Of a stretch of DNA of 64,000 bases, positions 5,336 to 64,000 are shown piece by piece; positions within the stretch are counted from its first letter, which is position 1; every line of letters starts with the position of its first letter. Where the stretch lies: NCBI RefSeq assembly GCF_964204645.1, contig NC_134035.1, forward strand, positions 1,922,001 to 1,986,000. Direction: 5' to 3'. The notes under the pieces are model-generated. The model was not told the DNA's origin, ran no database searches, and was given only the letters and a program-made list of their open reading frames with translations. Made by a program: the position numbers and the translations under genes. This DNA comes from Tubulanus polymorphus. Its lineage: Eukaryota > Animalia > Nemertea.

Positions 5336-8300
5336 GTAAGTATCGCAGCGAACAGACGTCGTTCAGAATTGAATATTGCGGCTGAAAGTCTGGGGCCAGT
5401 TGCATAGTCATGGCTTAGACTTAAGACCAGTCTAAGACAAACTTAGCTCTATAGCTAATCTAACAACTTAAGACCAGTCTTAAGATTTAAGACCACTTTT
5501 GGACTTAAGTCACGACTGTGCAACTGGCCCCTGGGGCTGGTTCCTCAGTTGAGACTTCAGTCCAAAAATGGTCTTAAATTTCAAGACTGGTCTTCAGTTG
5601 TTAGATTGGTTATAGAACTAAGATGGTCTTAGATTGGTCTTAAGTCTAAGCCATGACTATGGAACTGGGCCCTGGTGTCCTGAATGAACAAATTCGGTAT
5701 TGAATTGAAGAATTCCTACCAAAATCATTTTCAGATGCCAGTGTTCTCCACAACAGGTTTTACAGGCCACCCCTTTCATTATTACATTTACCTCTTTGAG
5801 AATCAGCCGCCCCTTATAAACTATATCGACTAGTTACCGCCCTGATTATCTACGAGTTGAATGAGTCATTTAGGCTAAAAAAAGATACTTTGTTACTCAC
5901 TTCTACTCAGCCAGGTCATTCTCTAAACTGCAATGAAATTTGTAATCAGTTCATTTCTAAAAACTGCCGGGTTTGTTATGGTTTAGTTTGATCATGATTT
6001 TAAAAAAAGTAGTAGTCAGGTGGCCGACTGAGTGAACTTTGATAAAGCTGAGCAGAAATGAGAAACAAATAACAAGGCATCAATTTTACATGTATACAGT
6101 GTATATGAGTTGAGGAGTCCTACTGAATATTTGAATTAACGATGGTTTGATTGCGTTGTCTTTGTCTTTACTCTAGAATCCCTCATCTGATTCCGATGAA
6201 GAAGACAGTGACGACGACAACGGCAACAAACGTACGTCGTGTCTGATCGACAATAAGACAATGGGCAATACCGGTTCGGTAACCGGCGACGACGCCACCG
6301 TTTACTACAGCGCGTGTCGCAACGGTGTATCGTTCGCTAACTATCCCGGCAACAACGACTGGGCGAGCGGCGCTTCGAATATCCACCCGCAGGTGGCGCC
6401 GGTCGATATACCGGCGTCGCCGATGCAGCGTCATTTACACCAACGCAAACTGAGTCGCGGTCAGAAAACGACCGCGACGAACGACTCTAAATCCGTTCTT
6501 CCGACGACCGGCGATAGCCTTGTAAATAATATTTATGCAAATATCGAAGCGTCGAAACGAGATCGCAGCATATCAGACGTGCAGGATCGATTACAGGCCG
6601 AGCAGGAGCAGCTGACGGATCGCAGTCCGAAGGAAGGATCGCCCGGCGCTTGCTCGAACGATTCGGTGAAAATAACGAATTTCGACGAGGTTTCGTTGTT
6701 GGAACGAACGACGGCCGTGTCGCGACGACGCCGTTCGAGTCCGGCCGATCGGTCGTCGCGATCGCAACGTAACTCGGTCGAGTTCGAGAGTTTGTGTCAG
6801 AAACGCGACAATCCGCCGGCGCATTGCGTCAGCGACGGCGACCTGTTACCGGATGCGCACGGAAATCTGAAAGACCCGGCCGATCACGCGCCGCCGTGGC
6901 TCGGAGGGGGCGCCGCGAACGTCGATATCTCGGAGGTGAGTTCGCCGGATTACGATCCTCCGGGCGGCGGTAGCGCGCGTCCGCGTCTGCCGAGTGGAAA
7001 CGCGTCGGACATCGGCGACATATTCAACGCGTCGTTTCGTCGGTTGAATTTCCGACGCGAGGCGCACTCGGTCGACGCCGGCCTGTACGCGTCGACGTCG
7101 CCGGAGAAAGACGCCATCTTCGAAAGCGCCACGGCGACCGAAACGAGCACGATACGAACGGTTTTACAATTCGATAAACTCGAAGGCGACATCGATAATC
7201 TGAAAGCCGATATGAACGTGATATTCGCGCGTATTCACCAGCTGTCGAAGGGCTCCGAACCGTCGGACACCGACTCGTCGGATTTTGACCTGGAAGCGTA
7301 TCGTAACCGCGAGGTGTCGCGCGCGATGAACGTATTGTTGAAGTATCGTCGTAGCAGCGTCGACGCGACCAGTTTAAAATCGTCCGAGTCGGATTCGGAG
7401 ACGAACAGCCGCGTTGGGTCGCCGGCCGAGAAACGACGCGCGTCGTCGCCGTGGTTATCGCCCGTCGAGACGAGGCGTTGTTATTATCGGAGCAGTCCTC
7501 CTCCCGCGCGCGCGAGCGTAACTCCGGAACGCGGAGTACGGGAAGAGGACGACTCCGCGAGACGATCGTCGGACTCGTCGGATAAATCGGAGTTATCGTT
7601 ACCGATATCGAAGCCGTTGACGCTCGACGATACGATGTTTATACACGGCGCGCGGTGTATCCCCAGAACGGAGCTCCTAGTCGTCGACGACGATGAGGAC
7701 GACTCGGTGACCGCGACGGACGACCTGACGAATCTAAGCGGCGTTCATGACGTTTCTAGTCAGGCTTCATCGTCGACGTCGACGCCTGATTCCGATATGT
7801 CTAGTTTATATTCTCCAGTCGGAACTCTCGCGTATTTGCCGTCTGTACCCGAACATACTGTGATAATGAACTGTGATGATAATGGTAACAGCGGCGGAAA
7901 CAGCAGCAGCAGCAGCAGCTCAGGTAAATCCATCTTTGAGTTTTATGCGTTTTATGTTGCACTTATTTTGACCCGTCCCCCCCCCCCCCCCGAAGCTGTC
8001 TCGATGTTGTTTCATCTTTTCTTTCGTTACAATTTGCTTAGTCAGTGTTTTCCGTTCGATGTTCTTCCTGTTAAAACGTAGACAAACAGATATTCTGATC
8101 CTCTCCAGGTTATATATTTCACTTATTTAGAAATGAACCGTGGTGAAACGTTTTTAATAGTCGACCCCGGGTAAAGAGTTCAAATATTTTAGTAAAGAGA
8201 AGAAACAGTTTGATTATTTCATATATATTTTATTCCGTCAAACCCGAAAATATTAAACGGGGTTAAATACATTAAATATATGTGAAAAAATGAAACCGTT

Positions 8301-11300: not shown

Positions 11301-14300
11301 GATAATTCATCGCTTAACATAATGTAACAATATTCATGTATCCCTGATTCAGTATCTTACAACATAACCAGTCTACTATGTTTTGCTTTCTCTTTCTCTA
11401 AGCGGTGGAAGGAAATATCAATCGCTTTTATTTCAGCTTCGCTTTTCGTTCTTGCAAAATCTTCTTCTTTGCGCTTCATTAATTTCATCGCTCGAATAAA
11501 CCGTGGGCCCCCGCTCCACAGTGGAGACTTAAGTACTTAAGTTGTCTTCAATCTTAAGACTGGTCGTAAGTTGTAGATTGTCTATAGAACTAAGATGCTC
11601 TTAGACTGGTCTTAAGTTGAAGTAGATTGGCTATAGAACGAAGACTAGTCTTAACCCTTTCAGTGCGTCTACACCGCAGTGCGGTGTATAAATCTGATGG
11701 ATTTTGCTAGTACACCGCACTGCGGTATATTGATGTAATTAGTAATTTGTAATTATCTCTATTGAAAAATGGTAGAAAGTGTCAAACATAGTGAAATATT
11801 AGTAACTAACGATACACCGCACTGCGGTGTAGACGCACTATAGTGGTATTCCCATTGTTCAACACACTAGGGTGGAATTTTTTAGAATTTTCAAATTTTC
11901 TCCAGCACTATAGGGTATTAATTAGTCAGCACTGAAAGGGTTAAGTTGTTAGATTGACTATAGTTACTAAGTTGGTCTTCAGCGATGACTATGGAACTGG
12001 CCCCTGATCATCTTTGTTACCCTACTGTGCGTTATATGTATAAAATCTGTTATCGCTTCATGTGTGTGAAGTCTCTATCTTCAAATAGAATTGTTTTATA
12101 CACGGGCAGCAGCAGCAGTGTAGAGAGAGATATGTTTTGATCTGTTTTTAGTTCAACGCTGCTCGTTGAAAATACATTTTCTAGTTGCAGCTGTACCAAT
12201 GTCTGCTAACATGTGTGTATTTAGCTCGGTAGTTTCTTGTATGCCTTGTTGAAACCCCTCGATTATAATAACGACTGTAGACCCTGGATTCCTCAATTGC
12301 AGTGAATATCGATTATATCGAAACGATCGGGAACCGCGGATGAAAATTAATACCATCGCAATAATCTATCTTCAAACTAATAAACCGTTAAAAAGATGAT
12401 AGATGTGAGAGCTTGGAGAACTCGGTGATGAATTGTACAGAATTATGCTGACATTTGAAATTATATTTAAGGATATTAAAAAATGATACCTTGTTTCTCC
12501 TATTCAGCCAGCTTATTCTGTAGACTACAATGAAATTTGTAATCAGTTAATTTCTGTAACTACCGGGTCTGATATTGTTAGCTTGATCATGATGATGTTA
12601 TGTACAGAGCATATAGGCGACCAGCCGGGTCAACTTTTAAGCTCACGGAAATGAGAATCAAGGTATCAACTTTTTTTAGCCTAACTTCATAATGCAAATT
12701 CCAAAGGTTCTATCTAAAAAAGATTTTTGTAATCACCTGAGATAAGCTAACTCCTGCTTAGAATGAATATGACAACCCTGGATGAATCATCCCTTTTATT
12801 TTTTATTATGAATAAATCAAATACTTAGCTTTATTTCATTTCAAAGCTGCTTTGCATTTATTTTAAACCATTTAATGCTTTAATATATTTAAAAAAAAAG
12901 AATAATACCTTGTTTCAGTTCATATCAGTGTTCATTTCTATAACTACCTGGTCTGTTATTGTAAGCTTAATCATGATTTTGAAAAAAGTAATGTACAAGG
13001 TAGATAGATGCCCGGCCGGGTATGAGAAACAAGGTATCAGCTTTTTAGCCTGACTTGGTAATGTTATTAAAATGCAAACAATTCGTATACCTGACAGATA
13101 GCCGTGCTGCTAACTTTTTTAGGTTCTATCTAAAAAATGTTTTAGTTTATCACCTGAAAGCTTGAGCTTACTCCTGCTTAGAATGAAAATGACAGCTCTG
13201 GGTCCAGTTCCACAGTTCTGAGTTAAGATTTGACCCTGGGTTAAAACATTGAAAATGAACTAACTTTAACTCAAAGTTAACTCTAACTCACAACTGTGGG
13301 ACTGGATCCTGATTGATTGTGTAATTGTCAAATGTCTATAAGTTAAATACTTAGCTTTATTCCATTTAAAAGCTGCTTTAAGTTTATTTAAAGTTTATTC
13401 AAAAATGTACATGATATTAAAAGCAAAAATTGAATTTTCAATTAATGCGTAATTTTTTTTTTCTCTGTCGATATTTTCCAGGGCTTCCACGCAATTCTCG
13501 AACATAGTAACTGCCGTTCCATACGCCATATAAATAAGGACAACTATTGCGCGATTCGCGCCGCGCTGTTCCAAGTATTACGTAACAAATTCCCGATCGC
13601 CGGAAATCTAGGACCAATCGACGGTGTCATCCAGGTATGGAGTTTTAACCCTTTCATTCCCAGACAATTGTGTACGCTCTGTACCAGATTATTTTTGATG
13701 ATGCAAGTATGTGGTGACACCTGTACAGCTGGATATGAACTATAATGAAACCAGACAGCTTTTTGCTAATCAATTAACACCTATGTACCATATAGTAGTG
13801 TGCTGCCCTGTACTAGCACCCTATTACAGGTCATCGCAATGGTTAACAATAGGCAAAATTAGTGACCAAGCAAATGGTTGTGAACAGGTTGATTAAACCT
13901 GAGCGCGGTGGAAAAAATTTCATTGTTTGTCATCTGGACGAAAGTCTAATAAGTTAGTTCTCTGATAACACAAGTTCACTTAAGTATAGACGACACCTGC
14001 AGGTATATAGACATACATGTGTGTACCCATGTACGCAATGTTGTTTCATCGGTCGTTTAGATAAATTGAAACATAAGATAAGGTCACAAACCAGGGATAC
14101 GAAGTATACAGTTATTCAAGGGCAAAATATCGGAGATATTGTCTCCTAAGCAGGGTCCCTACAACTCCTTGATTCCTTAAAAACTCCTTCTAATCGGAAA
14201 AAGCTTTTAAAGCTGCTCGAAACTCCTTTAGTTAGAACAAAATGTCAGAAACTCCTTTAAAACTATTTCTATTTTGAGAAATAGGCAATTTGAAATTTAC

Positions 14301-57524: not shown

Positions 57525-58747
57525 AAGTCAAGTCGAAATAGAAAATAGCTGTACAATTTTCGAGAAACTGACTCTTTGACCCAATTAGACTTGGACCCAC
57601 TTAGATGAAGAATATCTTAGGGTAAAAAAAATTGATACCTTGTTTCTCCGGCCGGCCGCCTATCTACCCTATACATTACTTTTTTTTAAAATCGTGATCA
57701 ATTTTACCATAACAGACCCGGCCGCTATAGAAATGAACTGTTTATAAATTTTATCATATTTTACAAAAATGACCCGGCCGCTGTGGAGAAACAAGGTATC
57801 ATTTTTGTTTAGCCTTACACTTAGAATCGATTATAAAATTTCATCATTAACTAAAGTTTATCTCGCCAATAAAATTTTCGTGAAACTGACTGTTAGACCC
57901 AATTAGACTAGGACCCACTTAGACAAAAAATATCTTACACTTAAAATCGATTTTAAATTTCTTCATTAATGCAGGTGAATTTAGTGAATGTTGAATTGAT
58001 TTACAGGGTTTTATTTTTACGTTCATGAAACGGAATGGACCAATGTCTTCATAATTTTTGCATTACATCCGTTACTTTGTGATATTTCTCTTAACCCTTT
58101 CAGTGCTGACTGATCAATAGCTTATAGTGCTGGAGATAATTTTAAAATTTTGAAAAATTCTGCCATAGTTTGTTGAATAACGGGAATACCACTATAGCGC
58201 GTCTACACCGCGGCACGGTGTATCATTAGCTACTTGTATTTCGCTATGTTTGACAGGTGCTGCCATCTTTCAATAGAGATAAAAACTAATTACTTATTAC
58301 ATCAAGACACCACAGTGCGGTGTACTAGCAAAATCCATCACCGATTTATATACCACACTGTGCTGTAGACACACTGAAGGGGTTAAACTTTTGAACACAC
58401 CTCAATTTGGTCTCGATACGACCAGAGTGAAAATGTGCAGTCTGAATAAACAGTTGTATTTACATCCACTTTACACCATATTGAAGAATTGCCAAAAAGT
58501 CTTCATTTTCTCATGTTGCAATTACAAAAGATCAGCCATTTTTGAAATTCTAAGATGTTGGGCCAGATGTTAATGTGTTGTCTCTGAAATTGTTTCTATT
58601 AAAACCCAAGGGCTACCCTCCATAGCCCTGACTGATTACAGATCTGTCATCTGGCGGATTTGTTTACAATCGATATGCCAATTTTCAAATGATGATAAGT
58701 GTCGTCGCTTAAATGTTTATGATGTCTCTATTTTGTTTTCTAGAAAT

Positions 58748-61716
58748 ATGGCTCCAAAACGAAAGCAGATAGTAAGTATTCATTTTTTTTTGTTCCAATA
58801 ATATGTCTGTATCTACATTGATACCTAGTATACTTACCTGAGTAGATGTGCACTACGTCATTGATATATCGGAGCTAGATTTAAATCCCCCGCCCCCACT
58901 CCCCCTGGTGTTGGCGTTCATACCAACCCATCAAAGATACCGTCCACTACACCTCACTAACCATCCAGGATACAGATGGAATAATGAATTAAATGTGGAA
59001 TTGAACCCGGGACCGGTTATCATTTGATGTTACAATCAATATTCAAAACTGAAACATTTTCTGGGGCCGGTTCCATAGTCAGGGCTTTAGACTTAAGATC
59101 AGTCTGAGACCAACTTGGTTCTATAGCCAATCTAACAACTTAAGACGAGTCTTAAGATTTAAGACCACTTTCGGACTTAAGTCTCGATTGACGTGCAACC
59201 GCCCCCAGATGCTTATTTTTCAAATAATTCTAATGAATGTGAATGTTATTGTTCTTTTTTAACAGCCAGAAGTCCTGGAGGAAATTCCGCCGCCAGTAAG
59301 TTTAGATTTTATGATATCATTTTATATAAACCTGTTTTGTTTAACCTGGTCCTCTGAAGCCGGTTAGACTGGTATTATGTTTAACCCGTGCTCAGTTAAC
59401 TGAATTCACTTTTAATCAAGTTAACCCAGATTTATTAAAGTAAACATTGGTCTCCATAAAACTGGCGCTTAGATTCATTGATCATTTAATGAATGATTTT
59501 TATAGATATGAATGTTAATTCTCTTTTCTAGATAACAGTAGAAGCGGAAATTCATTTTGTAAGTTTTCTATTAATCTCCTCGGTGGAATATGATATCTAC
59601 CATTTTCGCTGAGAGTCATTGAAACTTCATAACTCTTTAAGCAAGTTGTAACTGATTTCGTCTTCAGTTTGTGCGCGCGCTCACTTACACATACGCTTAT
59701 ATTTGCGCATGTAGTTCATAATTATCATCAAACTCGTAGTAATAACGATAATAGTAATGATAATAATTACAATTGTCATTTTTAAAGTGCAAATATCCCG
59801 ATAAAAGGAATTATCAAACTGATTTATCGCATGGTGTTTTTGGTTTTCTCTCATTGTAACAAGTTTACTCTGATGAAATCTTTTTCCAGATATTAAACCT
59901 GTCTGGTATTCGTTTTAATCATGATCTCTGTTAAATGTGTGCTACTCAATATGAAATAACAATGCAATTAATTACTATTCTTTCATCGCGACAGTTTGCT
60001 GCTGCTGCAGCAGCAGCAGCAACGACAACAGAAGTTTGAATTTTTCTGTTTAATGGACTCTATATCGTTTGAATCAAACTGTAAAACAAACAAATACAGA
60101 AATATCAAAGTTACAGAGATCAGAGTTTTAATGCAAGAAATTAATGAATTCTCTTTTCTTTTATTGCAACAGAACAGACAAACAGCGACGAATACAGTAA
60201 GTTTGAATTTTTCTGTTTAATGGACTTTATATTGTTTAAATAAAACCCTAAAACAAACGAATACAGAAATATCAGGGTTTTTCCAAATACAGATATAAAA
60301 CTTGTCTCTTGTTTTAATTATAATATGATCTCCTGTGTTTAATGTTTGCTACTGAATATGAAATAATGCAAGAAATTCATGAATTCTCTTCTTTTTTTTT
60401 ATTGCGACAGAATTCAGCGACGATGACGACAACAACAACAGCACCAGAAGTAAGTGAGAAGTTTTCTGTATCATGGAATATCTAGTCGTGTTTATTTCTT
60501 TCTTACAGACGATGATTTGTTTGTGATTTTCATCTTATATTTCATACCGGGAACAAAGTCATGAAAATAATCCTGCTTTCAATGAAATAAATTCCCGTCA
60601 CTTAGAATTATTTTATAATCAAGTTTTTTTTTATATAATATTAGCGCACACAGTCAAATCTGGAAACATTTGCTCACGGATATATGTGCATATATTTTAT
60701 GTATCTCTTTTATTGATGTATTAATGTTTACTGTATTTAACGTGTGAACGTGAAATAACAAAACTAAAATGAATTCTCTTTTTTTCTTTCATGTCATCAG
60801 CGTAAACAAACAGCAGCAAAGGCAGTAAGTATTAATTCTTCTGTTACCTTGAAACAACCGATTCTTATGAGTTTTTCGTCAGAATTATCATCAAAGTTAC
60901 AGAATTTAATCGGAGTTCGATTCCCTTCATAACTTATCGTTTTTGACCTGAATGTGAATGTTATTGTTCTTTTCTAACAGCCAGAAGTCCTGGAGGAAAT
61001 TCCGCCGCCAGTAAGTTTAGATTTTATGATATCATTTTATGTAAACCTGTTTTGTTTAACCTGGTCCTCTGAAGCCGGTTAGACTGGTATTATGTTTAAC
61101 CCGTGCTCAGTTAACTGAATTCACTTTTAATCAAGTTAACCCAGATTTATTAAAGTAAACATTGGTCTCCATAAAACTGGCGCTTAGATTCATTGATCAT
61201 TTAATGAATGATTTTTATAGATATGAATGTTAATTCTCTTTTCTAGATAACAGTAGAAGCGGAAATTCATTTTGTAAGTTTTCTATTAATCTCCTCGGTG
61301 GAATATGATATCTACCATTTTTGCTGAGTCATTGAAACTTCATAACTCTTTAAGCAAGTTGTAACTGATTTCGTCTTCAGTTTGTGCGCGCGCTCACTTA
61401 CACATACGCTTATATTTGCGCATGTAGTTCATAATTATCATCAAACTCGTAGTAATAACGATAATAGTAATGATAATAATTACAATTGTCATTTTTAAAG
61501 TGCAAATATCCCGATAAAAGGAATTATCAAACTGATTTATCGCGTGGTGTTTTTGGTTTTCTCTCATTGTAACAAGTTTACTCTGATGAAATCTTTTTCC
61601 AGATATTAAACCTGTCTGGTATTCGTTTTAATAATGATCTCTGTTAAATGTGTGCTACTCAATATGAAATAACGCAATTAATTACTATTCTTTCATCGCG
61701 ACAGTTTGCTGCTGCT

Positions 61717-61760
<44 letters not shown>

Positions 61761-62151
61761 GACAACAGAAGTTTGAATTTTTCTGTTTAATGGACTCTAT
61801 ATCGTTTGAATCAAACTGTAAAACAAACGAATACAGAAATATCAAAGTTACAGAGATCAGAGTTTTAATGCAAGAAATTAATGAATTCTCTTTTCTTTTA
61901 TTGCAACAGAACAGACAAACAGCGACGAATACAGTAAGTTTGAATTTTTCTGTTTAATGGACTTTATATTGTTTAAATAAAACCCTAAAACAAACGAATA
62001 CAGAAATTTCAGGGTTTTTCCAAATACAGATATAAAACTTGTCTCTTGTTTTAATTATAATATGATCTCCTGTGTTTAATGTTTGCTACTGAATATGAAA
62101 TAATGCAAGAAATTCATGAATTCTCTTCTTTTTTTATTGCGACAGAATTCA

Positions 62152-62183
<32 letters not shown>

Positions 62184-63907
62184 AAAAACGACAGCACCAG
62201 AAGTAAGTGAGAAGTTTTCTGTATCATGGAATTTCTAGTCGTGTTTATTTCTTTCTGACAGACGATGATTTGTTTGTGATTTTCATCGTATATTTCATAC
62301 CGGGAACAAAGTCATGAAAATAATCCTGCTTTTAATGAAATAAATGCCCGTCACTTAGAATTATTTTATAATCAAGTTTTTTTTATATAATATTAGCGCA
62401 CACAGTAAAATCTGGAAGCATTTGCTCACGGATATATGTGCATATATTTTATGTATCTCTTTTATTGATGTATTTATATTTACTGTATTTAATGTGTGAA
62501 CGTGAAATAACAAAACTAAAATGAATTCTCTTTTTTTCTTTCATGTCATCAGCGTAAACAAACAGCAGCAAAGGCAGTAAGTATTAATTCTTCTGTTACC
62601 TTGAAACAACCGATTCTTATGAGTTTTTCAACAGAATTATCATCAAAATTACAGAATTTAATCGGAGTTTGATTCCCTTCGTAACTTATCGTTTTTGACC
62701 TGAATGTGAATGTTATTGTTCTTTTCTAACAGCCAGAAGTCCTGGAGGAAATTCCGCCGCCAGTAAGTTTAGATTTTATGATATCATTTTATATAAACCT
62801 GTTTTGTTTAACCTGGTCCTCTGAAGCCGGTTAGACTGGTATTATGTTTAACCCGTGCTCAGTTAACTGAATTCACTTTTAATCAAGTTAACCCAGATTT
62901 ATTAAAGTAAACATTGGTCTCCATAAAACTGGCGCTTAGATTCATTGATCATTTAATGAATGATTTTTATAGATATGAATGTTAATTCTCTTTTCTAGAT
63001 AACAGTAGAAGCGGAAATTCATTTTGTAAGTTTTCTATTAATCTCCTCGGTGGAATATGATATCTACCATTTTTGCTGAGAGTCATTGAAACTTCATAAC
63101 TCTTTAAGCAAGTTGTAACTGATTTCGTCTTCAGTTTGTGCGCGCGCTCACTTACACATACACTTATATTTGCGCATGTAGTTCATAATTATCATCAAAC
63201 TCGTAGTAACAACGATAATAGTAATGATGATAATTACAATTGTCATTTTTAAAGTGCAAATATCCCGATGAAAGGAATTATCAAACTGATTTATCACGTG
63301 GTGTTTTTGGTTTTCTCTCATTGTAACAAGTTTACTCTGATGAAATCTTTTTCCAGATATTAAACCTGTCTGGTATTCGTTTTAATAATGATCTCTGTTA
63401 AATGTGTGCTACTCAATATGAAATAACAACGCAATTAATTACTATTCTTTCATCGCGACAGTTTGCTGCTGCTGCAGCAGCAGCAGCAGCAGCAACGACA
63501 ACAGAAGTTTGAATTTTTCTGTTTCATGGACTCTATATCGTTTGAATCAAACTGTAAAACAAACGAATACAGAAATATCAAAGTTACAGAGATCAGAGTT
63601 TTAATGCAAGAAATTAATGAATTCTCTTTTCTTTTATTGCAACAGAACAGACAAACAGCGACGAATACAGTAAGTTTGAATTTTTCTGTTTAATGGACTT
63701 TATATTGTTTAAATAAAACCCTAAAACAAACGAATACTGAAATATCGAGGTTTTTCCGAATACAGATATAAAACTTGTCTTTTGTTTTAATTATAATATG
63801 ATCTCCTGTGTTTATTAATGTTTGCTACTGAATATGGAATAATGCAAGAAATTAATGAATTCTCTTTTCTTTTATTGCAACAGAACAGACAAACAGCGAC
63901 GAATACA
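58748..63907 (+). CDS. Micro-exon gene encoding a repetitive Pro/Glu/Ala/Thr-rich protein; continues past the window end
   Basis: First exon 58748-58771 MAPKRKQI. Unit 1: 59266-59295 PEVLEEIPPP; 59532-59558 ITVEAEIHF; 59995-60033 FA8TTTE; 60173-60196 NRQTATNT; 60411-60449 NSATMTTTTTAPE; 60801-60824 RKQTAAKA. Unit 2: 60981-61010, 61247-61273, 61705-61770, 61910-61933, 62146-62202, 62553-62576. Unit 3: 62733-62762, 62999-63025, 63462-63506, 63646-63669, 63884-63907. All follow a polypyrimidine tract plus YAG, all are multiples of 3 without stops, and 15 of 18 have GTAAGT donors. Confidence 0.75.
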
Positions 63908-64000
63908 GTAAGTTTGAATTTTTCTGTTTAATGGACTTTATATTGTTTAAATAAAACCCTAAAACAAACGAATACAGAAATTTCAGGGTTTTTCCAAATA
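59234..64000 (+). repeat. ~1.72-1.75-kb near-identical tandem repeat (units start 59234, 60949, 62701) carrying the six-exon module
   Basis: Unit periods are 1715 and 1752 bp. Differences are mostly trinucleotide-tract lengths plus a duplicated NRQTATNT module in unit 3. Confidence 0.95.

Follow-up and report, generated by a model that had tools for sequence, protein, structure and literature searches.

The locus described here lies at the 3' end of a 64,000-nucleotide stretch of the Tubulanus polymorphus genome (hereafter the window; G000:C11:1922001-1986000, + strand) and contains a putative gene made mostly of micro-exons. Positions are those of the window and are continued beyond its end as extended coordinates, in which 64001 corresponds to L004:1 and 74001 to L005:1. 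The genome searched was the assembly of 77 contigs (268 Mb).

Micro-exon islands in the window

By direct reading and scripted scans, 18 islands of 24-66 nt were found on the + strand between 58748 and 63907, where the first-pass annotation had reported in-frame, stop-free islands with splice signals. The length of each is divisible by three and none contains a stop in phase 0. Every island is preceded by 14-17 pyrimidines per 20 nt followed by CAG or TAG, and 15 of the 18 are followed by the donor GTAAGT; the remaining three, which are the Ala-repeat exons, have GTTTGA. The GC content is 31-36%. When the window and its extension were scanned for GTAAGT donors with a pyrimidine-tract acceptor 12-69 nt upstream, 31 such splice-framed islands were present on the + strand between 58.7 and 78.6 kb, 29 of which were open and in frame, whereas the same signature occurred 0-2 times in each other segment or strand of the 104 kb scanned. 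For six independent islands of such lengths, the chance of all being open and in frame is ~1e-5. The signature is far above chance expectation.

The layout is that of a start exon followed by a six-exon cassette that is repeated about three times. Exon 1 (58748-58771, donor GTAAGT) consists of an ATG and seven codons (MAPKRKQI); its island starts at 58744, and these 28 nt are identical in six compared copies of the gene (see below). The cassette exons encode PEVLEEIPPP (30 nt), ITVEAEIHF (27 nt), F(A)nTTTE (39, 66 or 45 nt), NRQTATNT (24 nt), NS(T)nAPE (39 or 57 nt) and RKQTAAKA (24 nt). Cassette unit 1 (59234-60948, 1715 bp from start to start, 99-100% identical to units 2 and 3) carries them at 59266-59295, 59532-59558, 59995-60033 [F(A)8TTTE, 39 nt, a GCT/GCA triplet repeat with the weak donor GTTTGA], 60173-60196, 60411-60449 (NSATMTTTTTAPE, 39 nt, an ACG/ACA repeat) and 60801-60824, all but the third with GTAAGT. 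In unit 2 (60949-62700, spacing 1752 bp) they are found at 60981-61010, 61247-61273, 61705-61770 [F(A)17TTTE, 66 nt, with (GCA)14 at 61717-61758 and GTTTGA], 61910-61933, 62146-62202 [NSA(T)10KTTAPE, 57 nt, with (CGA)10 at 62153-62183] and 62553-62576. Unit 3 (62701-64000) crosses the window end and finishes at L004:527; its exons within the window are at 62733-62762, 62999-63025, 63462-63506 [F(A)10TTTE, 45 nt, GTTTGA] and 63646-63669, followed by an extra NRQTATNT exon at 63884-63907. This last exon is the product of a 238-bp sub-duplication and is present in only this one of the six compared gene copies. The PEVLEEIPPP exon is identical in all 18 instances across these six copies.

The period of the cassettes is 1715-1754 bp and the units are 96-100% identical, introns included, which agrees with the earlier proposal that a six-exon block was amplified in tandem to build this part. 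The caveat attached to that proposal, that introns are as conserved between units as exons, also holds: between units 1 and 2 substitutions were counted at 3 of 183 exon and 21 of 1524 intron positions, rates that are about equal. The N-terminus (MAPKRKQI-PEVLEE) is charged and by inspection lacks a hydrophobic signal sequence, in line with the absence of a signal peptide noted before. A pyrimidine tract with a TAG acceptor is situated at 58725-58747, 4 nt before the ATG, and is the same in six of the six compared copies. This suggests an unrecognised upstream 5'-UTR (untranslated region) exon or a trans-splice acceptor.

The gene beyond the window

The first-pass annotation had proposed to extend the sequence in search of a stop. 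The cassette array ends at extended 64527, and the reading frame continues for 17 kb past the window until it ends at a TAG stop. In total, 42 exons comprise a coding sequence (CDS) of 2,286 nt (762 codons) over ~22.6 kb, of which the window holds the first third. Most exons are very short (38 of 42 are at most 66 nt, 33 of 42 at most 51 nt) and are separated by introns of ~100-3400 bp. An acceptor with a pyrimidine tract precedes every exon, and a GT donor follows every exon except the last. Exons 1-38 are all multiples of three in phase 0-0.

Downstream of the array the chain proceeds with a non-repeated 45-nt exon (HHTGTRSTLASPDIE), an 81-nt exon (L004:4323-4403) and a 120-nt exon (L004:4771-4890), the latter two of which read like ordered protein. 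These are followed by two basic exons of 27 nt each, by seven Lys/Pro/Ala/Thr exons of 27-48 nt, four of which have the form KPT..(I/V)PAR, and by exons of 36, 54, 33, 42, 42 and 51 nt; up to this point all are in phase 0-0 and on the + strand. A 52-nt exon (L005:3890-3941) then shifts the frame to phase 1, to which the 66-nt (L005:4499-4564) and 236-nt (L005:6306-6541) exons fit exactly, and the last exon (L005:6874-7341) terminates with the TAG.

The predicted protein of 762 residues would begin with the basic MAPKRK and continue with an Ala/Thr/Pro/Glu low-complexity region derived from the triplicated cassette. This would be followed by a small ordered segment (the 81- and 120-nt exons), Lys/Pro/Ala/Thr micro-exon repeats, Pro-/Arg-rich exons and a conserved C-terminal module encoded by the last two exons. 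The residues encoded by micro-exons are 21% Ala, 17% Thr, 11% Pro, 9% Glu and 0.8% Gly.

Copies and paralogues in the genome

The 40-aa (120-nt) exon is found at 11 genomic places at 95-100% protein identity, in both orientations, on contigs C8, C9 and C11, and all 11 lie in distal chromosome regions, at most ~3 Mb from contig ends. Most of these places also hold the cassette DNA in about three occurrences. What had been described as a hidden gene is one of 11 near-identical copies and hence not a unique locus. Six of these were used for full-copy comparison. Homology between copies spans at least 57,278 to at least 79,888, which are the limits of the sequence compared, and the repeat block 5' of exon 1 was duplicated together with the gene.

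The exon chain is retained in all six compared copies. PEVLEEIPPP, NRQTATNT, the 40-aa exon, NDDFPEPPPPEPEAPTII and ESEIARIVQID are identical at the protein level in all of them. Differences between the copies concern the length of the triplet runs and how many KPT...PAR exons are present (two to six), and copy-specific variants include the extra NRQTATNT unit, the (GCA)14 allele and QPVSPPKCRREE vs QPVSPPKIPRDE.

More diverged relatives were found with the C-terminal exons. Residues 22-78 of the 78-aa (236-nt) exon match ~40 additional places at 46-57% identity, almost always stop-free, in evenly spaced tandem arrays on C3, C6, C8 and C12. The C-terminal 66 residues encoded by the final exon have counterparts at ~35 of these loci, at 45-46% identity, 1.4-1.5 kb downstream and on the same strand. 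With 11 near-identical and ~35-40 diverged members, the family would count about 50 genes.

Relative to the other copies, the one in the window lacks ~1.1 kb between the conserved upstream block and exon 1 (58553-58744): this gap measures 190 nt here vs ~1,290 nt in the copy near C11:2.07 Mb. An inverted and shuffled relic of the gene is located ~5 kb downstream on the minus strand (L006:2342-4207, extended 86,342-88,207). Its pieces correspond to the 78-aa exon (88207-88076, 84%), the DPVS exon (87308-87276, 91%) and the 66-nt exon (86404-86342, 90%), in an order that differs from that of the gene.

History of the cassette

The downstream micro-exon units are 67-90% identical in DNA to parts of the cassette (the NRQTATNT intron and acceptor regions), and the intron of the Ala-repeat exon equals the NRQTATNT intron minus GTAA. 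These matches imply that repeated duplication of a single exon-plus-intron unit gave rise to the micro-exon region. In a tree of the 18 cassettes from the six genes, cassettes of like position mostly fall together. One group holds the third cassettes of five genes, and some first and second cassettes pair across genes; 5 changes of position label were needed on the tree vs 8.9 for shuffled labels. Since cassettes group by position across genes, the triplication predates most gene duplications and would be ancestral to most copies, not a recent event at the window locus. The three cassettes of the copy at C9 near 968 kb cluster together, which points to local homogenisation.

Read coverage over the locus

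Sequencing runs were mapped on a 6-kb segment (L008, extended 62,901-68,900) that holds the 45-, 81- and 120-nt exons. Runs X1-X3 cover introns and exons alike and are therefore DNA. X4, a run guessed to be RNA, gave no contig on this segment. A skip of 241 bp (L008 911>1153) was seen in X2 and X3. It is no evidence of a polymorphism and is best explained by contigs from cassettes or paralogues without the extra NRQTATNT unit.

Homology searches and properties of the predicted protein

Exons were searched and folded one at a time. Among 1.84 billion representative proteins neither a self-match nor a relative of the 40-aa exon was found, and the same held for the last exon and the 78-aa exon among 5.8 billion proteins. 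An Atlas search gave no usable match, no significant match to the exons searched was present in the PDB, and no Pfam family was matched, the 81- and 120-nt exons included. The encoded protein would thus be an orphan with respect to the libraries searched. A weak phmmer match was to the multi-repeat protein P0002 (E = 1.8e-5), a value inflated by the repeats of P0002. The KH domain to which this match led was rejected: there was no Pfam match and no GXXG in the 81-nt or 120-nt exon.

When folded as a single exon, the end of the 78-aa exon (...RWSRRVDGRLWEGELRE), which is its most conserved stretch, gave a confident beta-hairpin (predicted local distance difference test, pLDDT, 83-88). The conserved tail of the last exon, likewise folded alone, was helical with modest confidence (pLDDT 67). 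A Chromo/Tudor-like fold for the C-terminal module, a beta barrel of three to five strands that may carry a C-terminal helix, found no support in this helical tail nor a match in Pfam, the exons having been folded separately. The basic N-terminus, the motifs SPKRAR and RRSPRLRRRR and the lack of a signal peptide together suggest a largely disordered protein that would be intracellular and probably nuclear. An elastic, PEVK-like function is pure conjecture.

Evidence for coding and alternative explanations

Of the indels between the near-identical copies, 8 of 9 in exons vs 16 of 72 in introns have a length divisible by three (Fisher p = 1.7e-4). At variable sites in the non-repetitive exons, 8 changes are synonymous and 7 non-synonymous, with three of the synonymous ones on consecutive third positions of the 120-nt exon. 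Treating the sites as independent, an assumption that does not hold, this would give p ~0.017. Intron divergence among these copies is only ~1.2%. For this reason purifying selection on the window's micro-exons cannot be demonstrated from the near-identical copies by themselves, and the coding evidence they provide is only suggestive. The strongest and decisive evidence for coding comes from the last two exons in the diverged paralogues. Non-coding DNA could not have kept two collinear exons open at ~50% identity across dozens of paralogues. The earlier view of the micro-exon gene as coding DNA is supported by this conservation in ~35-40 paralogues, by the full frame from ATG to stop and by the exon chain kept in six copies. 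It is therefore quite likely that a real coding micro-exon gene family is present.

Several observations weigh against this interpretation. No RNA support of any kind was obtained, and the only possibly-RNA run gave no contig on the mapped segment. The libraries of 1.8 and 5.8 billion proteins hold no protein with these exons. The donor of the three Ala-repeat exons is poor, and one exon among ~200 instances is frame-broken (55 nt, in a sister copy near C11:480k). Triplet-repeat exons would by themselves favour in-frame indels, which biases the figure of 8 out of 9. Finally, overall exon diversity among the six near-identical copies is no lower than that of introns, and the low-complexity exons are even more variable.

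The region could in principle be an inert AT-rich satellite in which splice-like motifs and open frames were products of chance that multiplied along with the unit. Copying a unit multiplies whatever chance feature it carries, and introns are conserved between units to the same degree as exons. However, the strand-specific signature persists over ~20 non-repeated exons past the array, the calculated chance for six independent islands is ~1e-5, and the frame terminates in conserved coding exons. This explanation is effectively refuted. We also consider it very unlikely that the locus produces a spliced non-coding RNA with an open frame as by-product of its triplet-repeat content. Non-repetitive exons (45, 81, 120, 54, 33, 42, 42 and 51 nt) are open and in frame as well, even if several others are hardly more than runs of GCN or ACN triplets. 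The exons of the phase-1 tail join in exact register and lead to a stop codon, and the terminal exons have been kept stop-free at ~50% protein identity in dozens of paralogues, against which stands the lack of a known peptide or protein homologue in the libraries searched.

A further possibility is that the family is real and that the copy in the window is silent or decaying, i.e. a recent unexpressed paralogue with a frame that is intact through its youth. As introns differ by only ~1%, the frame should still be intact in the absence of selection. One sister copy carries an exon with a frameshift, the possibly-RNA run was without signal on L008, and the ~1.1 kb lost 5' of exon 1 could matter for the promoter of the window copy. 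Nevertheless, all exons of this copy are intact from ATG to stop, and in the 40-aa, 78-aa and last exons it agrees fully or almost fully with the majority form, so that silence or decay seems unlikely. The activity of this particular copy is held with lower confidence than the coding nature of the family. In our view 58748-64000 of the window is probably the first third of a gene that belongs to a young and lineage-specific protein-coding family with many copies.

Proposed mechanism and significance

In such a gene each micro-exon would be recognised by exon definition via its near-consensus splice sites. The region may have expanded as an exon-plus-intron unit was duplicated in series; a block of six exons would then have been triplicated, with triplet slippage acting within exons. 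The symmetry of the exons means that skipping any one of them would leave the frame intact. Isoform diversity at the window locus through exon skipping, cassette number and triplet length is a conjecture. Extended to the whole family, it would make symmetric micro-exons in ~50 non-secreted, non-flatworm genes a combinatorial generator of nuclear disordered-protein isoforms, with diversity arising from exon skipping, cassette or exon copy number and triplet-repeat length. The family would then be an intracellular counterpart of the schistosome micro-exon gene (MEG) system that evolves in distal chromosome arrays. We regard this wider idea as possible and somewhat doubtful.

If expressed, the gene would have an extreme architecture, with 38 of 42 exons at most 66 nt long and 38 consecutive symmetric exons, and micro-exon genes would not be limited to parasitic flatworms and their secreted proteins. 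The gene is unannotated, being overlooked completely by standard gene finders, and no searched database has its protein. Some AT-rich satellites with regular GTAAGT spacing in this genome would thus be coding, and their annotation needs micro-exon-aware models. The locus would also offer a natural series for exon birth, from splice unit through diverged units, six-exon cassette and triplication to whole-gene duplication and triplet slippage.

Other features of the region

Outside the gene, just 5' of exon 1, a dispersed ~300-bp repeat (SINE/MITE-like; short interspersed or miniature inverted-repeat transposable element) at 58060-58420 is carried along in the duplicated unit. It occurs in dozens of copies at 83-90% identity on many contigs. 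Further copies are present in reverse orientation at 11651-11945 of the window and, partially, at L005:5053-5211 (extended 79053-79211), the latter inside the intron before the 236-nt exon. Two long tandem arrays are located 3' of the gene (extended 88,900-94,400 and 96,200-100,000; L006-L007). One has a ~1-kb unit full of GTAAGA motifs, and the other consists of short repeats with long open frames in all three forward frames (VASRGRYRYQLRLVDGIAISC...). A 606-aa open reading frame (ORF) at 6261-8081 (+), in an island of 55% GC, had no Pfam match, nor had the other larger ORFs in the window. Telomeres consist of TTAGGG repeats, with 2,104 matches to five units vs 33 internal TTAGG matches, and lie at contig ends (e.g. 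C1:32058194, C4:25817 and C7:21563989); this repeat excludes an insect genome.

Comparison with known systems

In schistosome MEGs the coding sequence resides mostly on exons of 6-81 bp that are multiples of three, with introns of 100-5000 bp (PMC10526429). They have 10-20 exons, are multi-copy, lineage-specific and hard to annotate automatically, and give largely disordered products that reach 189 residues at most and are secreted through a constant signal peptide at the N-terminus (PMC10526429). The present gene resembles them in exon size, in the first 38 exons being multiples of three and in the range of its introns. It differs from them by its 42 exons and 762 residues, by the absence of a signal peptide and by an N-terminus that on inspection is basic and nuclear-looking; the exon-by-exon searches of the 1.8 and 5.8 billion proteins, Pfam and the PDB revealed no sequence relationship. 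Alternative splicing is documented for MEGs and conjectural here.

Fibrillar collagen genes contain long runs of short phase-0 exons (54 bp) that derive from a duplicated primordial unit and encode a repetitive low-complexity polypeptide. The likeness is one of principle only, namely runs of short phase-0 exons that encode repetitive low-complexity sequence. Gly-X-Y repeats are absent (Gly being 0.8% of the micro-exon part), as are a signal peptide and propeptide domains, and the exons here measure 24-66 nt, in contrast to multiples of 9 around 54 nt. The PEVK exons of titin are short and symmetric, have a high content of Pro, Glu, Val and Lys, have multiplied as tandem blocks and are subject to exon skipping. 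The cassette exon PEVLEEIPPP recalls them, again in principle only: it is not part of a giant Ig/Fn3 protein, Ala (21%) and Thr (17%) dominate instead of PEVK, and no homology was found. By these comparisons the gene is a member of none of the three systems, while its architecture is MEG-like.

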